DNA of 64,000 nt from Cyanophora paradoxa CCMP329 (GCA_004431415.1 QPMI01000441.1:35957-99956); one strand, 5' to 3'. Shown: positions 20,813 through 60,300, numbered from the stretch's first letter. The notes: generated by a model from the sequence alone, not told the origin. Translations and numbers: made by a program.

Positions 20813-21117
20813 CCTGTGACTCCTGTCACGTCATCTTCTCCCGTACGTATTTTAGTACCCGCGGCGCCGGCCACGGGAAGAGACCCTGCAGCTGCAGCTG
20901 GCCTGGCCTGACCCTGCAGCAACCGACGAGGGAGGCACACGAGGGAGACATATGATGCATCGAGAATGTCACGCTTACGTTGCAAGTGGCCCCCGGAATT
21001 CGAAAGCCGTCGCCCCCAGAAACTCGAAATTAAACTCGAAACTCAGGCTTCGAATTCGATCAAAAAGAGGGGCGGGCCGCTCGGGGGCGCGTGGGGCGCG
21101 CAGGGCGCTGGCTGCGG

Positions 21118-25520: not shown

Positions 25521-25555
<35 letters not shown>

Positions 25556-26625: not shown

Positions 26626-26649
26626 TCATGAGGCCGTCGGCGGCCGTTC

Positions 26650-26930
26650 GTGCCGGTGTTCAACCCCCCGCCCCCCCCCTCCACCCCCCCCCTTCCCCCC
26701 CCTTCCCCCTCCACCCCCCCCTTCCCCCCCCCGCCCCCCCTTCCCCTGCTCCTCCATTTTCCTTTTCACATCGCCGTCTTCGGCCCCCCTTGAATTTAGA
26801 CACCCACTGGGCCCTCCCTAGGCCTCTCCCCACAGAGCCTGGCCGGGGGGGGGGGGGGGGGGAGGGGAGGGGGAGGGGGGAAGGGGGGAGGGGGGAGGGG
26901 GGAGGGGGGAGGGGGGTTCCGGTCCGGCAC
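26650..26930. repeat. Foldback-like segment with a C-rich left arm and a G-rich right arm
   Basis: gtgccgg..aacccccc plus C-tracts (26650-26750) mirrored by G-tracts plus ggggggtt..ccggcac (26845-26930). Confidence 0.45.
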
Positions 26931-27219
26931 CGCCCACGCCCTGTCTCTCTGTAGCCCCCCAGCTGCAGCAGCGCCCCCGGCTCGCACTCGGAGTCTCTGG
27001 CTTCATATTCCGATGCCAACGCACAATTTATTTCACTCGGTTCTGAGGAGATGATCATGAAACAGCACTGGCTGCATGCATCGACGCATGTGAAATTCTC
27101 TGAGGGCCATGGCCCGCGTCGCTCGCGAGCAGAGGGCTAATATTAATCCCAGATGACGGGCCCGCGGTGGACTCCAACCCCCAGGCGCGCCCTCTCCCCC
27201 TTTTGCTGTACCCCCTCGC

Positions 27220-27581
27220 CACGCCTCGGCGGAGTGGTTAGAGCGGGCTACGGGCTACGGGCCTCGCCGCGTCGACTCTCCACTTGCTGGCTACGGGTTC
27301 GATTCCAAGGGGAACGAATTTCCGATCCGTGTGGCGTGGCTGAACGTGAAAAGGTTCAAATCCCGGAAACCGACTTCGATGGCTTCCGTGACATGCCCGG
27401 CCTCGCCGAGTCGAATCCGGGCGGACCCCGTAGCGGCACTCACCTTCGAGGTGCGGGCCGTCCAGTGCGCCATAGCTATAGTAACGCGCAGAGGGAGCAG
27501 GCTGCGGTTAAGGGTCACCATGCGCATGCCCGTCGCGGCCCGGTCCGATAACCCCGACAGGGGAGCAAAATGGGTTTTTTT
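27220..27581 (+). ncRNA. tRNA-derived Pol III-like unit (SINE-like or tRNA pseudogene)
   Basis: A-box-like cggcggagtggttagagc (~27227-27244), B-box ggttcgattcc (27296-27306), second B-box ggttcaaatcc (27353-27363), and a T7 run at 27575-27581. No convincing cloverleaf. Confidence 0.35.
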
Positions 27582-28613
27582 GCTGTACCTCCTCTCACGC
27601 CCGCGCACTGCGGCAGGAGGCGAGTACTAGTGGGGAAAGCGGGCGGCCGCGGGCGGGTAGGGCGGGGGCGGAGGCCGCGGCTGCGGCGCGGGCCCGGGCC
27701 CGGGCTCCGATTGATAGTTTGCGAATTAGCGTTGCATTTGGGCACGACAAATGCAGTGCGTGTGCACATTTGTTGCAGCTGATTTAATTTCGAATTCTCT
27801 GAATTCTGATTTCGAAATTGTTGCATCTCAGGCTTCGAATTCAGCAGGGGACCGAGACGTTGAAGGCGGAGGGGTACCACCGCCGGCGAATCCTTCCCAG
27901 CCGGCCACGATGGACCCTGCGCATGCGCCCGGCCCCCTCTCACTTGGCACTACAGTAATTTCCCCATCCCCCCTTCCCGATCAACTATATAGCCATGCGG
28001 GGCCTCCATTAAAAACCAAAAAACGGCCACCCTCACGCCTTCGTGTTTGAATTACGAAAGGCCCGAGTCGGAGTGCGCGGGTTTATTTGTTGTCATGGAT
28101 CCGGGATCTCCCCTTGATCCCTCAACGAGATAATTCGAATAGGGGCGGTCCCTGGCTTGATCGATCCCTCGAGCCCCTGGCCGGCTCCGGGATCTGATGA
28201 ACCTTTTCATGGCAAGCGCTAGCGAAATCAAAGTAACCAATTTTAACACCGGACTACCGTAGTACCGTGCGCACTCCAGAGGGCGCGTGTTAGCGAACGC
28301 GTGCTGTGTATCACCAACGCCAATAATCTTAGGGCTGAACAGGCCTACGTCCCAGAGTAACTAGACAATCGAACTCCACCGGACACTTGTCGGTTTCCGG
28401 AGTAGACTTCCCGTCAATCAGCTCCCTGAGGCGCTGCGCCCCAGTTGCGAATTTTCGTCAGTCGCAACTCCATAAGCTTGCAATATATTAATTGAGCATT
28501 AAGGCTGCAAGGCAGCGAACCTTGCTAATGATGCGCTTGATCCGTTCGACAAATTCTGGCCCTCTCCTAAACCCCAACGTGTGTGCGATCTGCGGCGGCC
28601 GTGTTTGTGGAGT

Positions 28614-29861
28614 TTATGTCGAAGCAAACAAGGCAGAAAGCCCGAGCTTGGAGAACTCGAACCCCCGATTCTCTAGAGCTGCATAATTAGTGCGCGTATG
28701 ACGTGCCTCGTCGATTGCACCGACATCGCAATGAGCGAAGAGCCGCTCTTTAGGAAACTCGAACTTGCGCACGAAGCTAGACACCTGCAACTGGGGGTGT
28801 TTATCGACTCGAGGCAAGAACGAGCTATCATAGTATTTATTCACCTGCACGTCCGCCCACCCCGCTGCCGTGGCTTCCCGTTTGATCTCTTCGGGCTCGG
28901 AGAAGCCGCAGAAGGGGTCGTCACTGTTTGCAACGTTCTGCAGGACCTCAGGCCTGCTCGCCAGCTGGGGGCACGCTCTCTTGACAGCCTGCAGAGAGAG
29001 ACAGGGGGAGAGTCCGCAAGGATAAGGTTCTTGGAATCAAATCAAAACTGGCCTCCACGAGAAACGAGTCAACCTCGCGCGGCTTGCGCCAGGACAGGAC
29101 GCACAAGACGCCGCCAGGGCGTGCCGCGCGTAGAAGCTCGCGCAGCGCTCGGGAGCGCTCCGCCGCATCGAAGAAGAAGATAGCGAACGCCAGCGTGCAC
29201 ACGTCGAAGCTGCCATCGGCCAGCTCTCGCAGGTCCTGCCGCCAAACTCAAGTTTCGCGATGGAAATGCATATATATATGCGTGGTGCTGCAGCTGCAGC
29301 CGGCACCTTTGCGTCGGCCACCTCCGCGTGCAGCAGCTTGCCATACAAATTGTCATGACCATTGCTGTCCCCTTCGAGCTGCGGCAGGCGCGCCAGGAGA
29401 GCCTTCTTCACCAGCGCCTGGACCATCTCCGGCGAGAAGTCCGACGCCACCACGTCGTAGCCGGCCTGCCGACTCCAGTTGAATGCAAGGTAATTATAAC
29501 TAACGCACACACGTGCACGCCGGGGAGCGCGAACCTTCATAAGAGAGAAAGCCATCGCGCCCGTGCCCGCGGCGACATCAAGGGCACGCCGGCGTCTACA
29601 GCTGCGTGTGCGCTCCGTATCCTCGCGTCCGAATTCAAGCTCCTCGTAATCATGATCATTTGCGAGCTCGGGCTCGCTAGCGCTGGCCCGGCAGAAAGCA
29701 TTGAGGGCGGCTGCTGCCTCGTCGGTGAACAGCTCCGACACGCTGCCCGTGGTGGCATCATACGAGCTGGCGCGCCAATCCCACCACGTCGGCGACGCGT
29801 GCCAATCCTGGATTCTTGGTTCGGTCGCCTGCATGCGCATCTCGTCATGATCACTGATCAT
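28614..29861 (-). CDS. Class I SAM-dependent methyltransferase (Methyltransf_11/25, UbiE-like), multi-exon
   Basis: W..RASSYD, motif I ALDVAAGTG, VVASDFSPEMV, VADAK|DLRELADGSFDVCTLAFAIFFF, RALRELLR..PGGVLCVLSW. Confidence 0.87.
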
Positions 29862-32467: not shown

Positions 32468-32484
32468 CACTGGGAGCCAGAAAT

Positions 32485-32685
32485 TAAGTTTACCATATGG
32501 TAAACTTAGGGTGTGGTAAAGTTGTGCTGTTTGCGTTACACCACTGTAAAGTCACCAGGGTAAAGTCGCCGGGGTAAAGTCAGGGTGGTAAAGTTGTGAA
32601 AAGCGGGGTAAAGACGTCGGTGTAAACTCGCCGAGGTAAAGTTGGCGAGGTAAAGACGTCGGGGTAAACTCGCCGAGGTAATGTT
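32485..32685. repeat. CACTA-type subterminal repeat array
   Basis: 24-bp perfect palindrome taagtttaccatatggtaaactta (32485-32508), and about 12 (g/t)gtaaa(g/c) motifs across the array, mostly at ~14-bp spacing. Confidence 0.85.
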
Positions 32686-32918
32686 GGTTTCGGTGCAGCG
32701 GTTCACTTTTTTACGTTTTTTTTGCTTTTTTTTATTTTTTCTGTAAAAGCTATCTATAGCAGCCCATCTTCAAGCGATACTGCGCGCGAGCTCTATCCTA
32801 GAGCTAGCTAATCGGTTTGATGAATGCTTCGTATTCCTGAAATCTGCAGCTGGGACGGAATTCTTCTTATTTGCGTGCGCATGCGGACTGGCGGGATGCG
32901 CACCAGCCTGGCAGGTCA

Positions 32919-35900
32919 TTAATCAAGCTCATCTCCACCAACCTGGCTGCGGTGCGTAGTCATCTCCTCCTCGTCCGACGACAAGCCGGACTCATCCCCA
33001 TCAGGAATATTTGATGCCACTGCTGCAGCTGATTTCCCTGTGGCAAGTGTGACCAGCAGGTCCAGTGGCTCTGAACGTGATGAAGATCCTTGCTGAAGTG
33101 TCACGTCCATTGCAGTCTCCTCCTGCATCATGATGTTGCAGCAGCGACACAAGGAGAGGAGAGTTAAAGAATGAACGAACCAGGAGACGGACATTAGCGT
33201 CCTTGAAGAAGCGACCGTAATCGGCAGTCGCTCTTTCGAACTCGGGATTCTGAACGCGATGGAGCGAAGAATCGGCTTCAAATCGGCGCGCGATCTCTGC
33301 CTCATCAGCCTCGTTCTGTCGATGCCGAGATTGCTGCTCGGCCTGCTCAGCCTGAAGCTTCTTCATGTCCTCATCATTCGAATTCTGACTGTCTTGGCTG
33401 GCTGCGTTCGACTTTGCTCTCATCTCTTCCTCCTCCAGCTGCCTCTTGTCCTTCCGCTCTTCCTTTTCGGCTTCAAAGGCGTCGCGGTACACCCATTGCT
33501 CAATGACCCAGTCACCAGGCACATGAATCTACGGAATCATGAGTCAAAGTGCTAGCCGTCCAGTATTTTCATATACTTCTTACCACGTCACTGCGACTCT
33601 TTGCCAGCAAATCGTGCAGCTTGTTGCTTGAGCCGAATCCGAGCTTATCAGCGACCAAAGTCGGTGGCGTCGGCGAAACTCCAAGCCAGTATGCCCTGAA
33701 CAAAAGACGTCAAACATGTCGCGGATTTTTGCATTATTGATGCGCAATCACATCATATCCTGATCCGCGACTGTGTCTTTCAGAGGAGTATACACTTCCG
33801 TAGGATGGATACTCTTGAAGATCGTATTCTTGCAAGCATGGCGCGTACCTGCATTGGAAAATCATAAACATAATGCTTGATTGCGAGAAAGACAACAATT
33901 GAATGGCGCACGACCCCCAAACATGAAATGGCCTGGCTTCGTGCGGAATCCGAGGAAAGCGGGAACAAGGAAGCCTTTCTCGGTCTTCTCCCAGTGCGTA
34001 ACGAGAACGCCGCCAGGGGTCCGTTCCTCGAGTTTGTACTCCAGCCGGAGTTCAGTACGAATAGCGTCTTCTGACCAGAAGGGGGCTCGGCCTCGTGCAC
34101 TTTTCCAGATCCAGATCCCGGAGATCCCGGCTGGCGGCGGGCGGCTGAAACGGGGAGTTTGACGAGGACCCGCTGATTCCGCTCCCCATTCGCCTCGTTG
34201 TGCACTTTCTGAGAGTCGAATTCCAACTCGTCTTTGAGCTTGAGAGCAGCTAGCACATCGCGACGGATTCGCTGGTCTTCCGTCTTGCTTCGCTTGGCTT
34301 TCGGAGCCTCCATCTGCGGCATATGCAAGTCAATAAGCGGCATATGCAAGTCAATAAGCAGACATATGCAGCCGGCAAGTTTCACCCACACCGCCAATGT
34401 CGAACTGGAATTCAGCGAATCGTGATCAGCCCCCCCCCCCCCCCCCCCCCCCCCCGAAAGAGAAAATCCCGAAAGAGAACCCTCGAAAACCGCATGACAA
34501 AATAAGAAGTGCAAAACGCTCGCAAAGCAAAAGCGCAAAGCGGCAATTGAGACGCAAGTGAATTCGCAAATGTGACTTGAGCGACTGCGTCCATCTCGAA
34601 CACCTAGCTGCACCGGTCAGGTTGCCGGGTTCCGGACCTGCCCGTGCACGTGTCGACTTCCTCTCTTTGCAGAGGCCCGGGCGTACGCCGTCCATCTCGA
34701 ACACCTAGCTGCACCGGTCAGGTTGCCGGGTTCCGGACCTGCCCGTGCACGTGTCGACTTCCTCTCTTTGCAGAGGCCCGGGCGTACGCCGTCCATCTCG
34801 AACACCTAGCTGCACCGGTCAGGTTGCCGGGTTCCGGACCTGCCTGTGCACGTGTCGACTTCCTCTCTTTGCAGAGGCCCGGGCGTACGCCGTCCATCTC
34901 GAACACCTAGCTGCACCGGTCAGGTTGCCGGGTTCCGGACCTGCCCGTGCACGTGTCGACTTCCTCTTCTCTTTGCAGAGGCCCGGGCGTACGCCGTCCA
35001 TCTCGAACACCTAGCTGCACCGGTCAGGTTGCCGGGTTCCGGACCTGCCTGTGCACGTGTCGACTTCCTCTCTTTGCAGAGGCCCGGGCGTACGCCCTCC
35101 ATCTCGAACACCTAGCTGCACCGGTCAGGTTGCCGGGTTCCGGACCTGCCCGTGCACGTGTCGACTTCCTCTTCTCTTTGCAGAGGCCCGGGCGTACGCC
35201 GTCCATCTCGAACACCTAGCTGCACCGGTCAGGTTGCCGGGTTCCGGACCTGCCTGTGCACGTGTCGACTTCCTCTCTTTGCAGAGGCCCGGGCGTACGC
35301 CCTCCATCTCGAACACCTAGCTGCACCGGTCAGGTTGCCGGGTTCCGGACCTGCCCGTGCACGTGTCGACTTCCTCTCTTTGCAGTCGACTTCCTCTCTC
35401 TGCAGAGGCCCGGGCGTACGCCGTCCATCTCGAACACCTAGCTGCACCGGTCAGGTTGCCGGGTTCCGGACCTGGCTCTGTCAAAATGGCTCTGATGGTG
35501 TTGTTATCTGCAAAAACGCAAGCGCGAGAGCAATGTGCAGGCACGCTTTTGCATGAACATCTAGATAGATGGAAAGAAGGGATGAAGAGCAAAGACAGCG
35601 TGTGAAGAGAAATTGACAGAGGGCACACGTTTTTCACAGAGGCTTCGTCACCATCATCGTCCTGATCCCTATTCATTGGTTCATTAATGACACGCAAATT
35701 ATGAGCAGCATTTATGTAAATATGTCGATTGACACGACCGAAGAAAAATTGCTCACTGATCTCTTCGAGCCCTCCTTCCTCCTCCCCCTCCTTGTTTCCC
35801 CTTGCTGGCCGCGCCAGCATGCTTGTTCCCGGCACCAGCATGCTTGTTCCCGGCACCAGCTGCAGATGCCTTGATCCTCGGCTTTTTGGAGGCGACGGCA

Positions 35901-39409: not shown

Positions 39410-39677
39410 TGGGGCAGTCAACTCTGCGAACAGCGCTAAGTGACATTCTGTTGCTGTCTCATTGCTGCCTAGGAGCGCATCTCATCGCCTAGGTGCGCAT
39501 CTCATCGCGTCGCTGTACCGGGCTTCGGAAAACTCCGATCGCACTACAGCAAGACTAAGCACACTCAGAAGAGCTCAAGATGCTTACGGATGGTCGAGAT
39601 GCTCCACGCCGATGTTTTCAAACTGCGCCGTGTACCCCCGGGGGGGAAGAACCTGGAGCAGCGGTGCGAACCACGCC

Positions 39678-42600
39678 ATGCAGCGGTCAGAGCGACTGCG
39701 GTGCGAATGTCAGAAGTGTCAAGGCAAGTTAGTGCGTCCTGAGGTTTTCAATGCACATCAACTGCTAGCGCACACCGGATTCAGTAGCAGCGATCGGCAA
39801 GTCGAGTGCCCTTGCTCGCGCTGCAATGGAAAGCGCGTCTCGTCTTGGGTGCAAAGGATACATTTGCACCTAGACAAATATGGATCCAGTCTAGTAGAGC
39901 AAGCTGCCCGGAGAGCTCCTGTAAGCGATTTCGTTCCTTTCGTAGCCGAAGTTCTTGACGTACCGATCCCGACAATTTCGGTTCGAGCGGCACTAAGAAG
40001 ACGACGATTAGCAGCCCCGGCAGCACTTCAAGGCAACGAGCGACAAACAGATTCCAATTCGAAGCGCAAACGTGTCAACAATAAAGCCGCTCGTATGCTG
40101 CGAAGGCTGGGTAGATATACTGATCGTATTGGTCCTCAAGAAAACGGCAATGAACCTGGACATGAATCCAATATCGTCGATGGCATCGATGGCGATGATC
40201 ATGCTCATGAGGCTTTCGACGACCCAGCCGCAGAGGAAGGCCAAGCGGACGACATACGTGCAGACCCAGCTAGGGCGGATCAAGTGGATTATGGCCTAGA
40301 GTCGGATCAGGACGCAGCGCTCGACGGCTCAGATGATGAATGCACTACCAACAGGCAGAATTTTTATTCTGAGCCTCTTTTTGAGGGCTGTAAAGTGTCG
40401 GTGCGTGCTGGAGCATTCAATACATTGCTTGATATTGGCTGTATTGGCTTTTTAACTGTTCTCTAGCGCATGGATTACATCACTTTTTGCCTCGCATTGA
40501 AGAAACGCTTTACACAAGCACCTGTTGAGATGTTTGCATCAATCAACGCGGCTGTGTCTCTCATCATTGAGGGCCAACAAACTGCAACGAGGCAGCTCGG
40601 GTCTTGGAAGAGAATGATTAGAGAAATCCAAGAATTCGTAGCGGTAAATAATCAACCACTTTCAATTTTCGTGTTCGAAACGTTAACATTTCCCTGCTCA
40701 GCCTTCCATCACTTTCAGGACATGTGGGTATAAAGAGACAAAGCACAAGGTGGCGATTTGCAAGACAGTCTGGATCGAAGACGGAACTGTTCCTCCAAAT
40801 ACAGTCTGCGAGTGTGGCCATTCAACCTATGCCGATGGTGTGGTGGGCTTCTTTTTTGATCCGACCCGGAGTTTTCAGCAGCTACTGAACAGTCCTTCGT
40901 ATTATCCCCGGTTCCAGTGCGTTGATTTCGATTCTGTCGGTGCGGCCACGGCTGATCAAATTTACACAACGGCGTCCAGTTACGGCGTTCGAGCAATACA
41001 GATTGGGGGCGATCGTGTTCCAGATTACTATTTGCGGTCGCAAGAATCCGAAACCCAACATCTCACTGGCGACTTTGTTCAATCAAGACTTTTCTCTTCT
41101 CTTCACGAGGAGGGCTGTGTGCGAATTTCGGACGGTCTTGGAGTTGTGTGCGCATACTCTACAGATTCCGCAGTGACGCACAGCTGGTCATTTCCACACC
41201 TACAGCTTATTCTGAAAACTGGACTCTAATGTCGTGTTTCTAGGTCCCACGGCGGCTCTTTCACCCCTGTGTTTGTGATACCTATGTCTGCGCATCCTAA
41301 TTGGCGGTGCGTGATCATTATCTCGCTTTCCGCTTTTTCGCCACTTGTCTCACCCCGTTTCGCTCAGAACAGCAATGCAACGCCTTGTTTTTCTCATGGA
41401 TGGGAAGCCGAGAAACTTCGATGGAATGTTCCGCGTATTCCTTACACCGTGGCTTGTTGCCAACCAGCCGCCGCCCCCAGGAGTCCCCGCTCCCGAAAGC
41501 CAAGGGTTTGCATGCCTTATAATCTGTCTCTTTCTTTCAATCATTCAATACCGTTGAGCAGAGTGGGGTTTTGCAATCCTCTCACCGGCAAAACTGACAA
41601 AGCATATTTCACAATGGCTCTCAATATCGATGACCTCCCCGGATGCGCAACGGCATTTATGATAAGTTCGCGTAACGCATCCTTGCGCGGCTTTGTATTC
41701 CGGGACAGAAACCTAAACTTTCTGCAGCGTCGCACAGTGGCGAGCACGGCCATCCGCTTCGGAAGGTGGATTTCTGGAAAGCGCAGAGCAAAACCGCCGG
41801 GAAAAACATGTTTCAAGCACACGATCTCCCGCTCAAACACTGGATGCGGGAGTTGTGCGTACTGACCAAGGATCATGATAGACCCCCATCTGCCCGAACG
41901 GACTACTGCATGGTGCATCGAGCCGACGGACTGAAACGTTCCCACTGCAGCTGTTCTGACACCCTTCGGTACAGCGAGCCGACGGACATGCTGTAGAGAT
42001 CCAACGCCAAAGATGGTTTCGGAAAGAGATTACGCAAACAGCTTTTGTTCAATTTGTGAAAACGAAAACCTTCGGTAAACCTTTTAGAATGGATATAAGT
42101 GAACATCCTTCGAACGCGCCGTCCATTGAATTGTCTCTGACCAGGCGTTCAAGGCTTGCCGACTTTAGCGGAATGGCCACACTTTCGGCTCGGCCCCCTA
42201 TGCGACTTCAGCGAGAGCGACTGGGAGTTCCTGCGGCATGGCGAGCTGAATTTCGACATGGGTGTTGACCGTTCAGGGGCGCGGCATACTGACGAATTCC
42301 ACCTCGTCAAAAACCGTCTGGCGGATGTCTTCAACTATCTTCGCGGCAACGCGAATAATGGTGATAAGCTCAGTCCTACCTCGATTCAGTGTGTCGTTGC
42401 ATCTTCCAACTTCCATTCGTGGTTGATTTGCAACGTACAACCACTAACTTAATTACTTTCGTCAATGCGAAGGTTAAGCATCAACATGGATGTTCTTGTC
42501 CTTTACAGGGCGCCAAGCGAAGCGGAAATACGCTGCGCAGAGCAAAAGATGGAAAAGGATCGGCGACTTTACGAAGCAGCTCTCCGAAATGGCAAGCCTC

Positions 42601-44662
42601 CTCCACGCCAGCCAGTCGACCTTGTCGCGGAACTCGAAGATAACGCGCCGTTTGCCTGGGAAGCCACTGAACGGCTGTACGATGCTATCGAGCGTGTTGC
42701 AAGGCGCGCACGATATCCGCACTTTTCAGGAACAACGGTAAGAATTAAATTCGCCAGACCCAATTTAAGTGAAGTTCGCAATTACAAATCGAGAAGAGCG
42801 AACTTTGATGTTTATAATTAGGACTAGCAGGAGTAACCATGTGTGCAGATGGACGAACCGTCGTTTTTACGGACTGGACGAAACTTTCAAAAGTTCGCTA
42901 TTGCAGACGTGGCAGGCGACATTCTTCGCATGTGTCTTGATGCGGATATGGATAAACAGAATTGCCTCTATCGGATCCTCGTAATCAATCAACTGGACGT
43001 CCTGCACGGCATTGGATCGAAGGTAACGTTGAGAAAGCAAAGGCTCCGACACGTCCGTGACGTTGTAACAGATTGTTTATCCGGACTTCTTGCTTGAACT
43101 CCGCAAACTAGCAGTTCTTACAAGGGGTGCCGAACGTCACTACGTACCCGTGCCGTTCTGGACAATGTATGCAGCTCTCGTTGTTGATGCGTGCGCGAAC
43201 CATTGGCTGTAGCTTGCCTGCAATCGGCTTAAATGTGCGAAGAGTGGACGGATGCATCGAGCTGGGGCCGGCGCCAGCAGTTTCTTCCCGTGGAACGGAG
43301 CGGGGCGGTCACAATGTGAAAGTTACTGCAGGAATCGGGGCACAATCATCTCTGATAACGAGTGCGGCCCGACGAACGCAGGCAAGTTGTGAAAATATCT
43401 ATTGCAATGCATATTGAATTTCGGTATTGGAGACGTTTGAACGGATTTTGTTTGCAGGAAATGGGAGCCCTTGCCGTCCTGCAGCATGCAACAAGCGAGT
43501 TCTTGAACAAAATTCCACACCTTCTTGACACGGAAAAAGCCGGTGCCATTCGGAAGGGCAAACGTGGCTACAGCTACGATATTCACACAGCTGGCGTCGA
43601 ATACAGTAAGAAAACCAAACCAGAGCTGGGGTTCATTCTTGAAGGAAGGTTCGAAATTCGAATTCGCAATTGCCGCCGCCAGCTGCAGATCTAGAGTCTA
43701 GATCTGCCCCACATTGATGACAAACTCGCATTAATTCTGCACAGTGATGACAATCACGATGAAGAGTACGGTGGCTTAATCTCTTCGTTTTGCGAGCGGG
43801 AGGAGCTGTTCGGAAATCCCCCGTATCTGGCCGTTTTCTTCGACCTCTACGTTGACGAGCGAGAGCGATTCATAGAGACTAAAGGCACCTGGTTCGAACC
43901 ATCCGGATATCGATCCGCCCCTTGTTTGTTTCTTCGTGATCATGATCAGCATGCGCACCCAGGCCGAGCTGGGAATACACGATAGAACCTGTATTGCCGG
44001 AGGCTGGGCCCTGGCGTCCGATGGATCCGCACTTCTCCAGCATGCCTCGAGAATGGATTGGCGTCCCACCTCGAAAGGGAACTATGTATCCTTGCTTTTA
44101 CGCCAACCACCACCTGTTCATTTCCAGCGAACTCTCAACCGACAAGCACGACAGCTCATTCATGTCCTTTATCGCGATGGTTCCCCGACGGCAGCTCTGC
44201 GACGAGGGGGGCCATCCCTACCCTATCATTCCCCTCGGGCGAATGGGTTACCTCAGCGCCGAGGAGATCCAAGCGCATCCTGACCGGCGAGAGCCGGTCC
44301 GGCGCTATGCTCGTGCCAGAGGCCTTTTCGAGTTCGCCCACGCAAAGGCACCCGGGGGTGCGTTTCGCATCATTCGAGCTGCGGTCTACCCCTTCTCAGC
44401 TTGCTCGTTTATGCCCAACTTGAACTGCGACCGAATCGACATCACCAAAGAGGACCCTCTCTGTCGTTGGGTGTGGCCTGACACCATCGAGCCTTGGCGC
44501 CTGATGCCTCTCCCCGACCACACATCGTCGCAATTCGAGCGTGTGCTCCCTAACCCAACAATCGATCACCTTATCAGAGCTCAGCAGTGCTTCCCAGATA
44601 AGGGAGAGGTTAGGAACTTTCTTGGCGAGCGGCTGCCGTTCACGTCCCTGCGTAAAACGTAG
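39678..44662 (+). CDS. CACTA/EnSpm TnpD-type DDE transposase (Transposase_21/Tnp2-like), intron-containing
   Basis: Two CxCxxC..H zinc modules (CECQKC..H; CPCSRC..HL), EPLFEGCKVS, CECG..FFFDP..FQQLL, GDFVQS..YSTDS (D1), SFTPVFVIPMSAHPNWR, NIDDLPG (D2), TDEFHLVKN (DxMHxxKN-like), ELGPAPAVSSRGTERGGHNVK (E). C-terminal ORF 43994-44662. Confidence 0.85.
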
Positions 44663-44741: not shown

Positions 44742-45422
44742 ATGCAGCCGCAGAGCCTCGGAGGCCCGGGCCTTTCGGATCCGGTCCTGGTGATAAAGCA
44801 CACAATCATGATTCTTCTGATCATGAGCCCTTCGAGCTCGTGATCATGAAGCCTCAGGCCTCGGTACCAGGGCGACTCGGCGAGCTCGACGCATGGCCAG
44901 TCATGATCAAAAAGCTCGTGTCTCGTAGCAAGCAACCCTCCGGGCCCAGCCTAGAAGACACACGGCGCTGATGATGGGAGCTCGAGCCTCGAGAAAGCCT
45001 CAGGCCTCCTTTGAGGCCCAGGGGACATGCGCTGGTCATAGACTCTAGATCTGAGAGCCTCGGAGCTCGAGCTTGTGATCATGTGCATCGGATCATGACG
45101 CCGCTGAGCCTCACTGGGCTCAGGCCTCGGCAGCTCCCTTTGAGGCTCCGGATCCCTGATCATGACTTAATGCAGCCGCAGAGCCTCGGAGGCCCGGGCC
45201 TTTCGGATCCGGTCCTGGTGATAAAGCACACAATCATGATTCTTCTGATCATGAGCCCATCGAGCTCGTGATCATGAAGCCTCAGGCCTCGGTACCAGGG
45301 CGACTCGGCGAGCTCGACGCATGGCCAGTCATGATCAAAAAGCTCGTGTCTCGTAGCAAGCAACCCTCCGGGCCCAGCCTAGAAGACACACGGCGCTGAT
45401 GATGGGAGCTCGAGCCTCGAGA
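44742..45422. repeat. 253-bp direct repeat pair (44742-44994, 45170-45422), 428-bp period
   Basis: Copies identical except one t/a mismatch seen by eye. Lies between the convergent stops at 44662 and 45649. Rich in tcatga/gagctc/aggcct palindromes. Confidence 0.95.
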
Positions 45423-45648
45423 TCCGCATGATGGGCCGGAGCCACTAGGACGATTAATATTTAATTATGCCTCTGTCCCCTCATGATCAGCGAGGACGGC
45501 TTATGCACATGATGATCATGACGTGCGTGCATGCGCGTGCACGTGTGAATGCCTGCAGGCGCAGTTGCTTCCTCATCAATTCAAATCTATTACTTCCTAA
45601 TTCCTCAAAAAGCTACTCTCCTAATTCCTAATAAAGCTACATTCTCCC

Positions 45649-48600
45649 CTACACATAGATGCGATTCGGCCTTTTGCAATTGGGTCGGCGGCACTCGGGG
45701 CATTTGCATATTTGCTCTTGGCTGCTGTCGTCGAGGGGTTCCGACTGGAGGCCCGGAGGTCGTGAATTCGAAGAATGTGGGAATGTGACTACGTCAAGCA
45801 CGTACCGAATACTTCCACGTGAGGGGATCACCTGGCTCAATGTCTAACAAAGCATAAAACCCAAAACGATATCTGTCACCAACCATCACTGGTCGAAGCT
45901 CGACGTTCGGTTTGCAGCTGTGATTCTGCAGCACTGGCCAGCCCCCGGCTGCCATATCCAGCAACCTGCACGCGCAGGCCTGTTCAAGCAAGTAGGAAGG
46001 GTACTTGTAATTGGAAGAAAGAACGGAATAACCAGTTGAGAAGATGTTTCAGTCGAACATGCGTTGTGAGCCGCGTAGCTTTCGACCGGGAACTTGCTCT
46101 GGACCTGTTGCATTTGTTCCCCAGAAGCTCTCCCAAAAACATGCCTGCTCGTATTCTGGGGGCCCACTTCGGGTTCCGGATGCCAACACCACAGTCATTC
46201 TGCTCGTCGAAAACTTCCACGGAAATACTTGAAGACTGACCCACGATCTTGAAGTTCCGATTTCCGCAATCGGTAGTGCCATAAGAGCAGTTGAAAGGAG
46301 TGCACTGGTATTCGGAAACAATGTTGTGGCAAGCAGGAGAATCGCGGCAAAGAAGCAGACGTGACCCCGTGGCCCCGAAGCAGACGCAGCAATCATGGCT
46401 CAGTTGTTCTCTCACTGCCGCGCGGAACAGCGCGGTCAAAAATCGAACAGCGCTAGAACAACGCTCACGAACCGGCTTTTGGAATATGTGGAAACTGGAA
46501 GTTAGAATTGTAAGCCTTGATAACCTCATTCATCCGCTTTTTTGCCAGCTCCGATCCATCATGTGAAATTCGGGCCTGGTTTGGAGGGCGAGTATGATAA
46601 AGTTTCTGAACGTGTTCCAGGATGTGCGGAGAGGACTCAATTCTGGAGTTCTGAGCTCGGACTTCCGAGATGTACCTGCAAACGAGCACATGAAAAGGAA
46701 GAATACGAAGCTGAACCCTCCCGAACCTGAGTTCAAGTTCTTTGATGTGCTCTTCAGGGGAAGCCGTGATATCGTGATTGATGAAACGCGCCATAAGGTG
46801 CAGAGTAAGTTTCTCCTTGAATTCTTCGAGAGAAATCGGATACGTGTACGAAGCCTGCTTCTCGTATTCTTCCTCATGCAGCTGCCCTGTTGGGTACCAC
46901 ATCTGCAACGTCGGAGGCCTAACGGCGCCAGACGCGTCGAGAATGTCGTTCAGACATTCAGACAACTGGAGTAAGAAGTCGCCTGCATGGACTCCGCACT
47001 GCCGTTAAGCCTTCAGTACCGGTAAATTTCAGCAATGCGAGCAATTGAAATGCCGACCGACAATGTGAACGCGTCCTGAGCAGTTGACGTGGAGCAGGGA
47101 AATAAATCGATTCGACAGACACGGTCCTCAAGTCGTGTTTCCGGCAACCAGCGGTCACATCCTCGCATGCTCGAAAGCATCTCACCAGCGATGACAGCCG
47201 AGTTTTGAAAGTAGGTCCCAAGAGAATCGTAAAAAACCATTCCCGGCCCATCCGAGAAACTCAAAAGCACGTGAGCAGTCCTTTGCGATGAAAAAAATAA
47301 GCGAAACGATATTGTTATACGTTAAAAGAAATAGATTACCAGTGGAATGCCTCTTCCAATACGAAGGCGACCCCGGGCGCTGGTTTGCGGTGCCGTTCCA
47401 GAGATGCAATCTTGGAGACAATGCTCTCAACGACATTTCCATGGAATTCTAGGGGTCGGATTCCAAGTTGACGCATCAACTGTTTCGCACCAACAATCTC
47501 CAAAACTGTTTATAATTATGCTCGAAATTAGGCAATGGAAGACTTTGAGATGATCATTACGCACAATTCTGCATGTGGATGTCATTGAAAGGGTCACCCA
47601 GCGTGTGCTCTGGAAGAAAAGCGAAGCCTCCCGTGAATTCCGGCAACTCCGGCACGTCAGCAAGCGGACGCTCAAGTCGTTCTGGTTCGAGGCGAAACAC
47701 GTGAAATGCGTCCACGTTGTACGTTGAGTACAATCCTTGAGGGACAGTTCGTGGCCGAAGCCTTGCCTGCCTTGAAACTGAATCTGAATTCCCGTCGATC
47801 ACCTTGTTGGCGCAGCTGAGAATTCCCAGGTAATTGAAACGACCAAGAAGTCTGCAGTGATGCACATCGCGTTCCGACCATGGATGATGGGAAAGTATCT
47901 TTTGGAAAAACAGGATGTCAAAACAGCTTTGCTTAGAGTAAAAAAGACAGCAACTTGGACCCACCAGGAAGCCCGAGGCGCACTGAACCGCAAGACGGAC
48001 GAAGATTGATTCGCGAATATCGTGTTCCATCACTTGATCACTAATAACAGCGTGCGTAATTCTGCATTCATCACATTAAACAGAGAAGTAGGTGGAATCC
48101 ATATGTAAGAAAAAAGGGAGCTCACCCCAGACTTCCGAAGTCGGCAAGCCCGGCTTCGCCGATAACCAGCTCTGTGCGTTGTGTATACGCCTCGAGCAAC
48201 GCAATCACTTCTGGGAATTCGCTGAACATAACGGATCGGCACTGCTGAAGAAAGGATATCTGAAGTTTTTTGAAGCTTGCGAGAAACATCTGCAAGATTT
48301 CGAATCCGACGAGTTTCTTCAGACGAAATGGAAGCTGCCTCTCCATGAGAGCAAATATGAGGCTGAGCTGCCTCAGAACGCCACCTGAACCTGCTCCTAT
48401 GTCCGCAATCACAACCTCTGGCGAGTCCAGCTCCAAAGTCGAGTTCCCTTCCGGCAAGACCCCCCCGGAAATGAACTCTGCTATCGTTTTGATGTCAACG
48501 AGGCCGAGCTCGCCATAATTCAAAGATCGAGAGAGCGATCCAATGGATGAGGCTTTCATGTTGTCTTGTTTCTTCAGAATGCTGGGCAGACTCTCCTTCC

Positions 48601-51327
48601 GGATATGAAAACGCATATCGTACACCGCTCCAGCTTCATCCGCATAGCGACCATTTGTGACAACCTCAGCCGCGAGTTGCCAGCGCCGTGGAAAGTTGTC
48701 ACATCGACTGAATTCAATCATGCCACGGGAGCAAGAAACGACAAGCGGGGCGACTTCGTTTTCTCGCTTCTTGCGCTTCACTGGCTTGTCGCCTTCGAAT
48801 CACTCAGAATTAAAAAAACCAGAAACATTTAAGACGCTCGAACCGACATACGGAGCTGAAGCTAAAGATTGGAGGACTCTCGCTGCAGCCTGACGCCTGC
48901 CACCGCTGCTGGCCGTGGTGCGCGATGCACTGGAGTCAACAGATGCGTCTGAGGAATTGGGATCGTCGTTCGCGCCGTATGGCTTCTGGCTGAAGTCTAT
49001 TGCTGAGTCGTTTCCGGCTGAACGCGTTCTTTTAATTCCCTGGCCAGGCTCTGGTCCGAAATCAACGCCTGACACGCGGGGTATCAGTTCAGAGATGGAA
49101 ACATGAGCCATGATTCATGCATATGCTCACCGGGTATATTCTGAGTAAGGTAAGCCCAAATTTGATGCGTGTTCGGAAGTCGACCAGACGGTGTGCGAGC
49201 GGAAGGGTCCTTCGAATTCTTGATAGCGTACCGGTACCACGACACCCTCCAGTTGCTCAACTGTGGATGCGTTTTAGGCCGATCCGTACTGGGCTGCTGC
49301 GGTAGGTCGCTGCGCATGCTCTTCCGGCGCCGTTTGACGGTGACGGGCCGATGTGCAGCTAAAGGGCGTGGGAACTCATGATCATGATCACGATTCTCAT
49401 GGCAGGTTGGCGAATTCCGTGCCGGAGAGCTGTTGGAAGAACTGCTTCCGCCTGGAAGCTGCAGCTGCTCTTCCGCCTGGAATAAGCGCTCGCTTTCGGA
49501 CTCATCGCTCGCTGACTGTTCACCGTACGAAAAATCGGTCTTGGTACGATCAAGAGACCGCAAGTGAAGTTTACGAAGTTCCTCGGAATCGCCAGGGAGT
49601 CTGATCTTCAGAGCTAGAAGCCAGTCGCTGGCGACCGTCTCGGCATACTTCAATAGGGCACGCGAGCTCGATGTCGAAAGCTTCTTTACCCAATCCAGAA
49701 GTTCGGCGGGGTTTGCCGGATGGCCGACATTCACAGAAGGAAAATTCGCGTTTTCCAGCATATCGAGAACGACATTGGCGGCTTCAGCAGTGATGTCTGA
49801 TATGACCTGCAAAGATGATGGGATGACAACAGGTGTGCAGAGAAGGTTGAAGATTACCTTCCTGTGGAGGGCGTCGTCTGTTTTCACACCGAAGGATGCG
49901 AAGAAATCTGTTGGCAGCTGAGGAGCATCGTCGTCGCCGTCACTCGATGAGCTCGAGCTCGAGGAAGCGTACGGTGCTGCATTCGATTAAAAAGCGCGGA
50001 TGAAGCCCGAGCACACGGGCAGATGCAGCTTTTCTTTCGCACATGAGAGCGGTGGAGAGAATGCCCTGTTTCCTCGAGCTGCTGCCCGAACCAAGACTGG
50101 CGGCGTCCTCGGAGAACGCGGTGCGACGGAGGGCTGCGAGGATAAGAAGAAGCCCGCACAGTCAAGTTTTAGAATGGCCGCTCACTCTCAGATGGTCAGA
50201 TTCACGTGAAGGACTTGGGGGGTCCCAATGCTGCGCGAAGCTCAGATCTAGATTGCTGGAGGACGCTCAAATCGCTGGTTTCTAAGAACGGACGGAGCTC
50301 GTGGCACCAACTGGGCCCGGAGGGCAGAAAGGTGTGCGCGGATCCTGGAGCCGGAGGCGGGGGGAGCCGGATAGCGGGGGGAGCCGGATATAAGAAGCAA
50401 TAAGAAGTAAGAAGTAAGAGTAAGAAGCTGTAAGCTAAGAAGCTGCGTAGAAAGAAGCTCATTGAAGGGGAAGAAGCTTTTGAAGTAAAGAAGCTCTAGA
50501 CACAGCAATTGCAAGCAGGCAGCCAACCACGTGCACGGACCGAGCTCGTACGGCACTGCGATGGAAGCTCAGATTTCAAAGCGAAGGTATGGCGTGAGGT
50601 TGCCTTGAGTAAGAAAGGCTTCCCGCTCTGGTTCTGGTCCTGTACATGTGGCCACGCGTGTGTGAAGGGCGTGCATAGCGTATCCACATGTACATGCACG
50701 TACCGCGGCCGGTACGCCGCGGCCTGACTGGATTCTTGCAGCCTCCCATTGTTTGAGGACTTCTCGAAACCGCTCGGGAGCACCTGGGATCATGCGGAGC
50801 CGGCCGAGCAGTGCCGCTTGGCGCTTCTTGTAGGTTTCGAGCGGAGCGTCCGGTGGGGGCAGTTCATGTTCCTTTTGGAAAGCCGCAAGACCAGAGCGAT
50901 CGGCTTCAGGAGCTCGCACATGCGCTTCTGGAACAAAACCTCCTCATTCGAACTCTGGAAGGCGCCCAAGCGCGTTGGAGAGGTCAGAGATGTGGGCATG
51001 CGCACACGCCGCAATCGCGCTACGCATGCTAGTTGCGATAGAAGCACGGCCGGGAGAGCTGGCCGGCGCCGAGAGAGCACGGCCGGCGCCGAGAGAGCTG
51101 CGGGTGGTTGTGTAGGCAAGCTCTGTTCTTGTGTACGGACCTGTTTTGCTCTTAGCATTCTGTTCTACCGTCTTGACGACGTCGACCGGCAGACGAACTC
51201 TGTACCCCCCTTGCGCGCCGTGCCTCGGCCGTGGCCACCGTAGCGCGCAGCGGCTGCCTTTGGCGGCGCGATGAACAGCTTCAGAGAGCCTTTCTTTGAC
51301 TCTGACTGCTTGAGTCGTCACTGGCAT
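45649..51327 (-). CDS. Multidomain chromatin modifier: DOT1-like class I methyltransferase + Ulp1/C48 SUMO protease + AWS-SET-postSET (SET2/ASH1-like)
   Basis: DOT1-like: LNYGELG..IADIGAGSGGVLRQL..LVGFEI..|ITHAVISDQVM..GFL|ILSHHP. Ulp1: FNDIHMQN|FL..FHW|TAHV..FYDSLG..QDAFTLS|CGV. AWS: CVC..C..C.N..QCTPFNC..CGNRNF. SET: VEVF..GVGIR..GMFLGELLG..NHSCKPN..FYALLDIEPGDPLTWKY. Post-SET: CKCPEC. Stop 45649. The 5' extent (50.0-51.3 kb) is uncertain. Confidence 0.82.
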
Positions 51328-54369: not shown

Positions 54370-57300
54370 CTAATCTTCGAACCGTACGCGTGGAGTGTGT
54401 CGTGATTCCGAACATACACAGCCAACAAGATCCGATCTCATCAATGACTCCAGGCCCCAGCGAGCGGCTCTCTCGCAAGGCTTAGCGATGCTGCTCTCGA
54501 AATCGTCCCAAGTAATGCGAAAATCGTACATGGCCTGCGAATGGGTGTGTGGGATGTTAGTTAAAAGATGGGGATCGAACAAAGATCGGGCAACATTACC
54601 CGAACAAGCATATTGTGATTGTTCATATACGCCTCGGCGGCGGGCATCCATTGTGTATCCTCGATTATTTGCATAGTTTTCTCCCACTGAAGATAGCGAA
54701 GCACTGTGAGTATAATGGCGCGCGCGGGTGCCCATGGCCAGCAAAATTGCGCACATCGTGCACAATGCCTGCCACGTTGAGGCAGCTTCCTAGAGAGCCC
54801 TCCCTTGTCTTCCGCATCAGGTAATCCATGGCATCGACACCGGGCGCCACCTCGGGATACGAGGAGTAATACGGCGCTAGTGTGTGTGCAGCTTGCTTCA
54901 GAAGTACCTCGGCCATTAGACGGTTTCGGTACAAATGCTGAACGAGATTCTGAGTAAATTAACAGGCCAGGCTCTGATATTGATCATCTTTGTCTTACCT
55001 TCAACATGCATTGGTCCTGCTTCGGAAGGCGGTTGCAAGAGCGAGCTTCAGTGTACGGATGACGTACATATTCCTGAATCGTGTGCACAGAAGGCACAGG
55101 ATCAAGCATCCAACTCTTGAGAATTCCGGTGTCATGATGAGGAAATAGTGTTCTGAAAGTGTCACCGAGGCGTTTGTGGTGACGATTGAATATGTGTCGA
55201 TACGGATGCCCTGGGGCAACAATTGGCTCGAGGCGCATGTTTCCACGGAAACCGCCAACTTGGTAAGGAACCCAGCCATCACGCGCATGCGACGCGTACG
55301 AGCCTTTCCAGGTCTTTGCGTCGAGGAAGCAGTCAAGACTATTTTTGAGTTTGTGTGCACGGACGCCGACAGCAGGAGCTGGGACGGGCAAGGTCGCCGG
55401 ATAGTCTTGTGAAAAGAACGAAACTTGATGCCGGGCGTGTTCTTCCAAGTTGCCTTCGTCCGGCCAAACGCCAGAACCGACAGCAAGAGTGCGCTGATAA
55501 GGACTCTTGAAAGGGGGGAAAACCTTGCACGCCTTGCAAGGGAGTCTGATTTCGTTATATTCCATAAAGATTGTTCGACAGTCCTGTCCGCGAGAAATCC
55601 AGCTGGCGCAATCCGCAGGGGTCATCGTTGGGAACAACTTCCCGAACATGCTTCGTGTTGACCGGTCTTGAATACGTGTTTGGAATCGGGAATTCGCAAC
55701 TATGTCTTTCGAGTGCGCAGAAGAAGGTGAAAACGTTGAGCCGTCACCAAATGCAGGGGAATCCGGATTGAGAAGAATTACGTCATCATCAGCTTGTTTC
55801 TTTGGAGGAGTCGAGCACCTGGAATTCGGGTCCAAATTACCGGCAGTGATCGACAATTCACGATGCTCAAGCTCACCCTTTGCCCGCGTTCTCGGACAGT
55901 AACGGCACTTCGCCAGTTGCCTCAGTCGAAAGATTTGCAACGACGTCGAAATCGGGGTTTGAGTATACATCGTCATCGCTCAAAAGAGCAGCAGAAGCTC
56001 TTGCCCTGGGCAAATCATTTCCAATTCTGCACACACGATAGCCTGAGCGAGCGTTGATAGCAACAGAAACAAAAATCCACACCCGGTGCCATCGCTGTCG
56101 ACTGTCAGCGTGACAGCGGCGGGCAAGGCCGGTCTGGTGACTTCAGACATCGTATCGGCCAGCGACATTACCTCGCTATCAACGTCATTGCCAGTTGATG
56201 CCTGTTGCGGACGAAACGGGAATAGCTGCAAAGCTTTGGCGACACTCTCCTTGAGCATTCTGAAGGCCATTGCTGACGAAAGGCCTACGTATACCGGGCT
56301 GAAGAGGTGTTGGGCTGACTTCAATGTGGCGGGAAGAGTGGCGCATACTGATCGATACCCCCCGCAAGCAGTTGGACCCCCCCCCCCCCCCGCCCTCCCC
56401 CCCTCTTTGCGAGTTTTTCGACGCGTACAAGAACAACCCGAAGATGAAGCAGGCCTAAGCCGACGTCTTCATGTGGTGCGTGCAGCAGGCCAAGAAAGTT
56501 ACAGTTATTTCGCATCAGATGCACTCGCATGCACATATTCCAAAGCTATTTCGTCCATATCGCGGTCGTTGTAGTCATACAAACTTCTTCTCCTTCGTTG
56601 ATGTCGCGCAATGCGAAGAATGCGATGCCAAGTTCGCCGTTTGCTGGACTCGAGACGTTCGTGGATACCACTCTGCGTTGTCATGATTAGTCAGCACCCG
56701 AACACAACAGGCTTAGTGAAGCAAACGAACAAAGGAATAAGATTTGCCGATCCCTTCGGACCGTGATTAATTATTCTAGCAAGACCATTCCCTGTTGTCG
56801 CATCGAGGCTGCGTACGGTTCGAAACTGCGCCTCTCAAGAGACCAAAAGCATAAGAAACGCACGCAAAGTGGCGAGAACCGATTGTAAATTCGTAAAGAT
56901 AATAGTGGCCGCCACGTTGCTGCAGTTTCTTTCGTAATGTGTTTATGCTTGCAAGACCACGAACGAGGTGGCCTCGATAGACAGAAATGAGCTTCACGCA
57001 GCAGTGAGTAGAGCGTTTTTTTTGTATAAATCTCTGAGCAAGAAGAATGCGCAACTGTTCCAATTACGATACGCTTGGCTGCAATTGCACCCATTCCCTT
57101 TGGAGGTCCGAAATTGCAAGGGCGCAACAAATCTGATTCGTATCGGGAGAGTGCCTCCTCTCCAGCTGCGATGAGGTTTCGGGCAGCTTGGAGCATCTCT
57201 CTACTGATGGTGAGGACGACCGAGTTGACGAGTGTTGGAATCGAACGAGAATTGCGTGTTCGGGAAGCCTCCTCTTCGAGGAGTTTGCGGTATTTGCTTG

Positions 57301-60300
57301 CGAGTCGAGGTGGAAGATCCGGTGGCCGCCAGAATGTCAAATCTGCCTGAGCGTTCCGTGCGATAAAAAGCTTAACTTGTACCGATGCATTAAGGTGCCG
57401 ATGATACAAAATGACATGAAGACGTGCAAGAGCGTCTTTAGCGGTCTTCGTATTCCCCAGCTGTGCTCGGCTGTTGTGCATGTAGAAGGAGACGAAGCGA
57501 TCGGGATTCTTTTCCAAAAACGCAGTAAAATACTCAACACACGATACGTTCAGCGTCTGCAAAATATGAACGGTCAGCCATTATATGTATAGGTAAATGA
57601 CTTCATTTCGGAAAGAACCTCGTCATTCTCTCCGGCATTGAATCCAATGCAACTAGGCATTGATTCAATGAGATCGACGAGTTTCTTGAAAGCTGAAATG
57701 GAGATTTTCCAGCCATGTGCTAGAATAACTTTTGTCACATCGTTGCCCTTGAATGCTTCGTATAAATCGACGACCTTCACGAGCGCAAGTTTCAGAAGAA
57801 CGCGGCATCTTCATCTGCATGCCTACCTCTGTGTCTTGTACGGGATGAGATTTATTGACGAGTTTCAGGATTTCAGGGAACTTTCTTGACTCTCGTGCAT
57901 CGGTTATCATTTGTGAAAGCTCTTTGTTCAGTCGAGTGTTTCGCACGGGACGACATCGGGTGTCTGCTTGTTGTAATTAGAATACGCAAGTAACATGCAC
58001 TAGAAGCTTCTAGGTCTAACTATAATCAGCGGGCTTCGGCGGGATCACTGATCTACTTTGCTGCTAGCCTTTGCCCCTTTTGTTTTGCCGCTAGCGCTGC
58101 GGCGTCGGCCGCGGCCTCTGCCGCGGCCTCTGCCGCGGCCTCTGCCGCGGCCTCTGCCGCGGCCTCTGCCGGTTGATTCTTCGCTGGACAATTCGGTCGC
58201 AGCATCACGAGCCAGCTCACGCTTCTCTGAGACCGAAGCATGCTCGCCGCCCTCCTCGCCTTGCTCGCCGCCCTCCTCGCCTTGCTCGCCGCCCTCCTCG
58301 CCTTGCTCGCCGCCCTCCTCGCCTTGCTCGCCGCCCTCCTCGCCTTGCTCGCCGCCCTCCACGCCCTCCAGCATTGGACCTTTAAAAAAAGGTAATGTTT
58401 TCAAGCCCGATAAAGATGCGAATGCGAATATGAACGCCCACCTTTCTTATCGGCTTTTTCCGTTCTCCTCCTCTTGAGCTCCCTATCATCTTCATCTGCG
58501 GGAATAGCATCGTTCAGTTGTAGCGCCGCGATTAGCGGAGCTAAATAAGAAGATGAACCGGCAGAATCCGGAGCTGCCGTGATAGTGAGCATTTGACTAT
58601 CAGGTCCGTTCAAATTTTGGCAGGGCAAGGACCTGATTTGGAAATCGAGCTCGGGCCGGCCACGGGGGCAGGAACCTGCGAAGACTTCTTGACCCATTCG
58701 TCCAGTTCCTTCCGGTCGAAAAAACGTCTTTTGAATGTGTCTGGTCCTGATGAGCGAAAAATCTGGTTAAAGCCTCCGAATTGGAGTTCAGCGAAGAGCT
58801 CACCAAGAGCTTGAAGTTGATCCTCGAAGTATTTGGGTTCGAGGAAATAAGCAGGGCGGTCTTCCGAGCTGAACTTCGCATCTTGCTTCGGAAGGAGATC
58901 ATCAGCTTCTTTGAGCTCGTCGAGAGTCCAGAAGCCCACTGCAATAAAAGAATCATATAATTGTTAGCAAAAGTTTGGAAACCTCTAGAGAATTGCATGT
59001 TATCAAGCAAACGAACCGTGAAACGAAGGCTTGATTGCGTTCAACGAGTCCACAACCTCGCGTTCTGCACGAGAGAGCTTTCCGCCAAGCATGCTCTTGC
59101 GGACGAGTGGATGGTATCCGACCGCGCCGAATATCACATCAATGTTTGGCTGGTCTGGAACACCGAATTGGGTTTCTGGTTCGTCGTCTTCTTCCGCATC
59201 CTCGCGACCGATGGCAAGCTGCGGCACGAGCACTCGTGTGATGCGGCCGAACAAGGCGCTTGATATTGCCCATCTGCGCGTGCGTTATTTTAGATTGTCG
59301 AAGTGATTGAAGGCATGCGTAATGGCGCACTTGCCGAAGGCATGAAGAATCTCTGTAGCGAGAGGCCCATCAAAGAATCGATTTTCTTTGAACATGTTCA
59401 TCTGCACGATTTCACCGGATTGCATGAACTTTGTAGAGCTGTAGGTCCATGGCCAGTCAAGAAAAACAAAGCCTGGCAAGGACGCAAATGTGCGTACACC
59501 ATCCTTATGCACAGGCGATACATAAGCCGAGCCTTCGACATCTTCTCGCCACGCTTCGCGTGGCGGGTGTGGATAACCGTAATCTGCGTCTCGGCATTTT
59601 CATCCCTGTAGCGGTGTCACCGGACGCAACAGGACATGTTAAGTAGAGAAGGCGCACAGCGCGTTGTGGACAACAAGGGCCTGCGGACACGTCTGGAAAA
59701 TTTCTTTGGCAAGGCCCATGCAATGCTCACACTCCTCGAACGAAACCATGTGTTCTTTGTGCTTGTGTTTGGAAATCTGCTTGATCTTCGTGTTCGCCTC
59801 TCGCATATCATAAGCGGCGAAGCCATAGTACATGGCGTTGTAGTCCTCTTCCGTTACCTGGTCGTCCACCCCGAGGCCCTCTGCTTTCTCTGTAGCCGGG
59901 CGCGAATCGTAGGACATAAAGAAAGCAGGCTGGAGATTCATTAAGAATAAATAAAGAAGTCTTCAAGCCTACCAAGAATGCAAAACGCACCAAGCCTTTC
60001 AAAGACGAAATAATTTCATTCTTCTCTTTCATGTTGTAAAACTTGAGCATCTGCTTCTTGTGGATGTCCTTCACCTCGTCGCTCGACAACTCCGGTCCAG
60101 AAACTGAAGCGATGGAGGTTACAAGGAATCCCAAACACAAAACAGGACTCACAACAAAAAAGTGTTGTTCCTGGCACAGAAGCCTTCAGCGCCTTCATCA
60201 CAGGCCGAACCTTCGTGTTGGTCTGGGTGAACCACAAGTCAGATCACAGGCCGTAAAGCATGAAGGATATAAAGATTGAGACCTCGTACACAGGTGCCAA

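Follow-up and report, generated by a model that had tools for sequence, protein, structure and literature searches.

Few transposons bring along chromatin enzymes of their own, and those that do offer the clearest examples of how mobile DNA manipulates host silencing. In the red algae Bostrychia and Chondrus, giant Plavaka elements of the EnSpm/CACTA superfamily carry the Plavaka accessory gene PAG2, in which an N6-adenine DNA methylase (PF01555) is fused to a SET domain and whose product was proposed to act on the element's own chromatin; SET genes are also found in HarbingerS elements and Helitrons (10.1101/2025.02.11.637652). Ulp1 domains have long been known in Mutator-like, CACTA, and Ginger elements (PMC2836005, PMC13317346, PMC2528002), and in plants the transposon Ulp1 lies within anti-silencing VANC-type genes of Mutator-like elements (PMC2836005, PMC13317346). 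Here, we analyze a SET domain gene located on the minus strand of a 64,000-nucleotide (nt) stretch of the Cyanophora paradoxa CCMP329 genome (GCA_004431415.1 QPMI01000441.1:35957-99956), referred to below as the window, whose numbering we use throughout. With moderate confidence, we favor its reading as cargo of a giant CACTA/EnSpm-type transposon, an accessory gene that is intact and encodes one polypeptide with a class I methyltransferase-like, a Ulp1/C48-like, and an AWS-SET-postSET module. The demonstrated part of this reading comprises the continuity of the frame, the SET domain, the S-adenosylmethionine (SAM)-binding motif I, and the position beside a transposase-like gene in a CACTG-ended, repeat-rich region. 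The SET domain is the sole established module, the two upstream ones being predicted at the level of motifs.

The likeness to PAG2, which we assessed by domain content and description, lies in the putative placement on a giant CACTA-superfamily element of an archaeplastid alga and in the combination of an N-terminal SAM-methyltransferase-type module with a C-terminal SET domain. The first domain of PAG2 is PF01555, whereas the present gene has neither a PF01555 match nor a (D/N/S)PP(Y/F/W) motif, and its motifs follow one another (YGE, motif I, GxE) as in DOT1 or in canonical class I enzymes. In addition, a Ulp1-like module is placed here between the methyltransferase-like and SET modules, and no ParB or 2OG-oxygenase partner gene, nor any PWWP or PHD gene, was detected between 27 and 64 kilobases (kb) at an E value of ≤0.01. 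Reading the first module as a PAG2-type N6-adenine methylase was rejected, no exon showing a PF01555 match or a DPPY-type motif. By its predicted domain content, the gene is not a PAG2 member.

The Ulp1/C48 domains of Kaonashi/VANC-type Mutator-like elements, plant CACTA elements, and Ginger1 transposases resemble the present case in being SUMO-protease-like modules on DNA transposons. However, these known domains match pfam02902, whereas the module described here was unmatched in our searches, all of which, for sequence and for fold, were made exon by exon with single exons as queries and without an alignment. Its partners in the predicted chain are, moreover, methyltransferase modules, in place of a transposase or VANC. 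For a DOT1-type domain in a transposon, a limited text search found no literature report. An earlier note, written from the DNA alone, had proposed a fusion of a DOT1-like methyltransferase, a Ulp1 protease, and AWS-SET-postSET in one frame and considered the architecture unrecognized. The combination now appears less isolated than was thought, because methyltransferase-SET accessory genes and transposon-borne Ulp1 domains have already been described.

Stop-to-stop translation of the minus strand gives open stretches that chain from 48799 to 45652, with the stop codon of the gene at 45651-45649. We enumerated all frame-keeping GT-AG and GC-AG pairs between adjacent open stretches and obtained a GT-AG solution that keeps the frame at every junction, with nine introns of near-uniform size (62, 63, 64, 59, 59, 59, 58, 67, and 61 nt; range, 58 to 67 nt). 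The predicted exons are the following.

ending at 49131, within 49986-48844, minus strand: exon A (possible, upstream), an open frame followed by a frame-keeping 62-nt intron; no family match
49068-48844, minus strand: exon A2 (possible, upstream), an open frame followed by a frame-keeping 63-nt intron; no family match
48780-48126, minus strand: exon B, N-terminal part of the class I SAM-methyltransferase-like module, with YGE, motif I, and GFE
48061-47565, minus strand: exon C, probable rest of the methyltransferase-like fold, linker, and first Ulp1-like motif; flanking introns of 64 and 59 nt
47505-47340, minus strand: exon D, HW at its end (candidate catalytic His); no family match
47280-47058, minus strand: exon E, YDSL (candidate Asp) and a Gln near its end; PDB and Atlas empty of usable matches
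46998-46469, minus strand: exon F, CG at its start (candidate nucleophile), then an open linker of ~170 codons; no homologues found
46410-46033, minus strand: exon G, Cys-rich AWS-like stretch and SET N-lobe (GVG)
45965-45806, minus strand: exon H, SET C-lobe with NHSCKPN and the Tyr of PLTWKY; Pfam SET match
45744-45652, stop to 45649, minus strand: exon I, post-SET CxCxxC cluster (CKCPEC) and stop codon

Exons B to I amount, on recomputation, to 901 codons plus the stop. The GC content of the exons at the three codon positions (0.57/0.44/0.56) is of the coding type, that of the introns ranges from 27 to 59%, and a 4-nt shift is possible at the F/G junction without effect on the frame. The gene may include exons A and A2, or its start may lie within exon B, at the first in-frame ATG, and the predicted polypeptide is roughly 900 to 1,260 residues long. 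A single transcription unit encoding one continuous chain is plausible and the most economical reading of this layout, because exon C combines the likely end of the methyltransferase-like module with the first Ulp1-like motif, because exon F holds the Cys box and ~170 further codons that reach the AWS exon, and because the non-coding gaps between exons never exceed 67 nt. All the motifs on which the earlier note relied (YGE, DIGAGSG, GFEI, HW, YDS, Q..CG, NHSCxPN, PLTWKY, and the post-SET cysteines) are present on the minus strand where it had located them. Its proposal that GT-AG splicing keeps one frame agrees with the frame-keeping introns at all junctions, whereas the fragments that might derive from RNA, described below, are unspliced.

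The C-terminal part of the chain carries the firmest assignment. Exon H matches the Pfam SET family (PF00856) with 37.2 bits (cut-off, 22.4; E = 4e-9), and SET is the sole Pfam or NCBIfam family matched among all exons and open stretches of the gene. The best solved relatives of exon H in the PDB are ASH1L (2e-6), NSD3 (1e-5), NSD1 and NSD2 (3e-5 to 8e-5), and SETD2/Set2 (4e-3), all of them AWS-SET-postSET methyltransferases of histone H3 lysine 36 (H3K36). The NHSCKPN motif, at 45925-45905, occurs only once in the window; PLTWKY lies in the open stretch 46048-45797, and a Cys-rich AWS-like stretch followed by GVG lies in the open stretch 46529-45987, which contains exon G. Given these relatives, the assignment of the C terminus as a bona fide lysine methyltransferase of this architecture, of the predicted ASH1/NSD/SET2 type, holds. 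This part of the earlier note is borne out by the Pfam match, the relatives found, NHSCKPN, the catalytic Tyr, and the post-SET cysteines. The likeness to ASH1L, NSD1 to NSD3, and SETD2/Set2 spans the alignment of the C-lobe (E = 2e-6 to 4e-3), NHSCxPN, the Tyr, an AWS-like Cys pattern discernible by eye, and the post-SET CxCxxC cluster. In contrast, the exon encoding AWS and the N-lobe is here too divergent for any profile, PWWP, PHD, and SRI partner domains are absent, and the upstream modules are unrelated to anything in those proteins. The PDB sequence search with exon G returned no relevant match, and its AlphaFold model as a single sequence reached a predicted local distance difference test (pLDDT) score of 39.6, too low for fold comparison.

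Upstream, the open stretch 48799-48125 contains YGE (48517-48509), DIGAGSG within motif I (48409-48383), and GFEI, the GFE of which ends at 48299. Motif I conforms to the full nine-residue SAM-binding consensus, for which all six frames of the 64-kb window yield a single match and shuffled sequences give an expectation of 0.02. YGE upstream and G-x-E downstream lie at plausible distances from it, and an acidic residue occupies the expected beta-2 position. Because motif I is unique against this expectation and is accompanied by YGE and G-x-E, exons B and C likely encode a class I methyltransferase-like module. A protein-language-model search with exon B placed DOT1 clusters first (score, 0.90; 144 to 155 shared features), and its nearest clusters are either DOT1 or class I methyltransferases; the score and shared features fall short of what members of one family usually reach, the recognition value is below the level typical of known families, and the tool rates the match as weak. 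AlphaFold gave exon B, as a single sequence, a pLDDT of 35.6, again too low for fold comparison, and NCBIfam returned no match for this exon.

The resemblance to DOT1 and DOT1L includes, besides the weakly scored language-model clusters, a YGE preceding the D-x-G-x-G-x-G motif I, the post-I G-x-E, a long helical insert, and a G..DF-like motif. Conversely, the present module has neither a PF08123 match nor a sequence relative, the NN of the DOT1 VNNF motif is replaced by DQ, and a DOT1-type fold is putative. Compared with those of DOT1L, the motif spacings of the present gene are 9 to 13 residues longer.

Four Ulp1-type motifs follow in canonical order, namely, FND..M late in exon C, HW, YDS, and Q-x7-CG. 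HW forms the last two codons of the open stretch 47509-47339. YDSL (47231-47220) lies in the open stretch 47321-47016, 19 residues after the candidate His under the splice model, while the Gln stands near the end of exon E (47058) and the CG at the start of exon F (46998), 58 residues after the Asp. The order and spacing of His, Asp, Gln, and Cys hold only under the predicted D/E and E/F splices. In Ulp1 and SENP proteases, the Gln-to-Cys spacing is 6 and the Asp-to-Cys spacing ~50.

The context of the gene, which had been missed in its first reading, appears to be that of a giant CACTA-type transposon. The SET gene and a transposase-like gene converge, with 3' ends 1 kb apart, the SET gene being located 13 kb inside a CACTG terminus.

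32468..32690, plus strand: CACTG terminus CACTGGGAGCCAG with seven GGTAAAG-type 14-nt subterminal repeats, probable left end
34588-35474: tandem array of ~8 copies of a 101-nt unit (96 to 97% identity), inside the putative element
39444..44659, plus strand: transposase-like multi-exon gene, convergent with the SET gene; Pfam Transpos_assoc, E = 3e-5
44742-45422, strand not assigned: two 100% identical copies of a 253-nt unit, 428 nt apart, between the two convergent 3' ends

The largest exon of the transposase-like gene, which gives the Transpos_assoc match, contains two CxCxxC...HL..G units, and the other exons of this gene gave no match to Transposase_21 or Transposase_24. The GC content is ~50% over the repeat-rich 30 to 64 kb, compared with 66 to 74% at 20 to 28 kb. 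If the element is single, it exceeds 31 kb, with its right end beyond the window. No second copy was found in the window.

Sequencing reads provide a further view of the locus. None of the runs containing the SET gene stretch is recorded as RNA. Three runs guessed to be RNA yielded just two read-sized contigs (48116-48251 and 45792-45942), both of which continue unspliced from exon into intron and may represent DNA carry-over or pre-mRNA. Across the whole stretch, one contig of 10,972 nt from a DNA run matches the window with full identity and no break, and it may be the source of the window sequence itself. Over 45500-50100, a DNA run from a second sample contains 42% of the sampled words, compared with 95 to 100% in four runs from the first sample; this difference could reflect presence/absence or sequence polymorphism of the copy or plain lower coverage.

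A number of results weigh against the interpretation of the locus as an intact three-module cargo gene. Exons B and C, searched separately, matched no Pfam family even at an E value of ≤10, the DOT1 profile PF08123 included. The PDB sequence search was empty for exon B and gave no relevant match for exon C. An exhaustive HMMER search of 1.84 billion representative proteins returned no relatives of exon B; this library excludes the proteins of the present genome, as the search missed even the query itself. Scans of metagenome and viral contigs likewise gave no relatives of this exon. For the protease-like module, exons C, D, E, and F, each searched separately, gave no Peptidase_C48 (PF02902) match at an E value of ≤10, and phmmer searches of the PDB with exons C, E, and F found nothing related to Ulp1 or SENP, exons E and F giving just weak, unrelated matches (E = 0.5 to 1.7). 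The Atlas language-model feature search with exon E produced no usable match, a word-indexed homologue search with exon F gave none, and metagenome and viral contig scans found no relatives of exon F. Even within the C-terminal part, exon G, which carries AWS and the SET N-lobe, matched neither an AWS nor a SET profile at an E value of ≤10, and the usual E-Y-x-G-E motif reads E-L-L-G-N. As for the mobile context, the Transpos_assoc match (24.5 bits, E = 3e-5) falls below its gathering cut-off of 27.7, word-indexed searches with two transposase-like exons gave no matches, and the inverted partner of the CACTG terminus was not found within the window. Finally, no spliced RNA was found in the four runs examined, three of them guessed to be RNA.

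Because queries were made exon by exon and without an alignment, the negative results for the two upstream modules are weakened, and the names DOT1 and Ulp1, as motif-level resemblances, are unproven rather than refuted. In the DOT1-like part of the earlier proposal, YGE, motif I, and GFE are present, motif I beyond chance, but no profile, PDB, or database relative supports the family name; in the Ulp1 part, the His-Asp-Gln-Cys motifs occur in order, but profile, PDB, and Atlas searches lend no support. Among the Pfam models that the note had singled out, SET was matched, whereas DOT1, Peptidase_C48, and AWS were not, exon by exon.

These empty family, PDB, and database tests of the upstream exons would be expected if the SET domain alone were functional and the DOT1-like and Ulp1-like features were degenerate remnants or chance motifs in a fast-evolving N-terminal region with no enzymatic role. 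Atlas recognition scores under the level typical of known families point the same way, as do the distances of 8 residues from Gln to Cys and 58 from Asp to Cys, longer than the Ulp1/SENP values given above. We nevertheless consider this reading unlikely: motif I satisfies its full nine-residue consensus, is unique in the window, and has the acidic residue at the beta-2 position; the four Ulp1-type motifs keep canonical order and near-canonical spacing; the upstream exons are long open frames of coding-type composition; and the design of the queries handicapped the searches. A host chromatin gene beside, or interrupted by, a transposon, and hence outside the mobile unit, appears quite improbable to us. 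With the right end of the element outside the window, inclusion of the gene is unproven, and the identical, unbroken 10,972-nt contig would be unusual if many slightly different copies existed. Yet the gene converges with the transposase-like gene at a distance of 1 kb, lies 13 kb inside the CACTG end, and shares the ~50% GC content of the repeat-rich region; no homologues were found for exons B and F, unlike what is seen for conserved host chromatin enzymes, and the gene is virtually silent in the sequencing runs examined.

The splice model could also have wrongly combined two or three separate genes, for instance, one for an upstream protein of its own and one for a SET-only protein whose start is the ATG at 46529; no transcript evidence was found for the joins between exons. 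That ATG opens the stretch 46529-45987, and the open stretch of exon A2 terminates at 48800, where a stop precedes by 80 nt the first ATG that is in frame in exon B. However, the ATG at 46529 falls inside the open frame of exon F and the peptide it would add does not resemble a protein, equally sized GT-AG introns occur at all junctions, and no intergenic gap is available for promoters or terminators, so that we regard this division as highly improbable.

Under the favored reading of a cargo gene on a giant CACTA/EnSpm-type element, the host would be a eukaryote with introns of ~60 nt, and the encoded protein would act on chromatin at or near the element. Its SET module may write the transcription-linked mark H3K36me, and the Ulp1-like module could perhaps strip SUMO from silencing factors, with the outcome that host silencing would be resisted or transposition helped. 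We propose a chromatin-modifier role countering host silencing as the most likely function; the same role has been proposed for red-algal PAG2 and for the Ulp1-bearing genes of plant Mutator-like elements. The presence of a SET gene on a CACTA element of a glaucophyte would mean that the pattern seen with Plavaka and PAG2 in red algae reaches a further archaeplastid lineage. If the upstream modules proved active, two writers of active marks and a SUMO protease in one protein would make a compact, testable anti-silencing device. The most far-reaching version, in which one transposon-encoded polypeptide would edit chromatin with three enzymes, namely, a SUMO protease flanked by an active DOT1-type methyltransferase (H3K79 class) and a SET methyltransferase of the H3K36 type, seems unlikely to us. 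Were it true, a giant CACTA element could mark itself with two histone modifications linked to transcription and remove SUMO from the host silencing machinery. Its protein would be without precedent, both as a DOT1-type enzyme reported from a mobile element and as a natural protein that unites the two lysine-methyltransferase folds.

The window contains other features as well. An exon of an ordinary Methyltransf_11/25/UbiE-type methyltransferase at 28951-29247 (minus strand) lies outside the putative element and is unrelated to the methyltransferase-like module of the SET gene. Between 50000 and 64000, one open piece of 60 to 94 residues has a weak Aminotran_3 match (E = 0.0015). At 56500-57600, the open pieces scanned for a PR-Set7-like SET domain returned no SET match at an E value of ≤0.01. 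The high-GC block at 20000-28000 contains long poly-C/poly-G inverted runs at 25521-25564 and 26837-26880.

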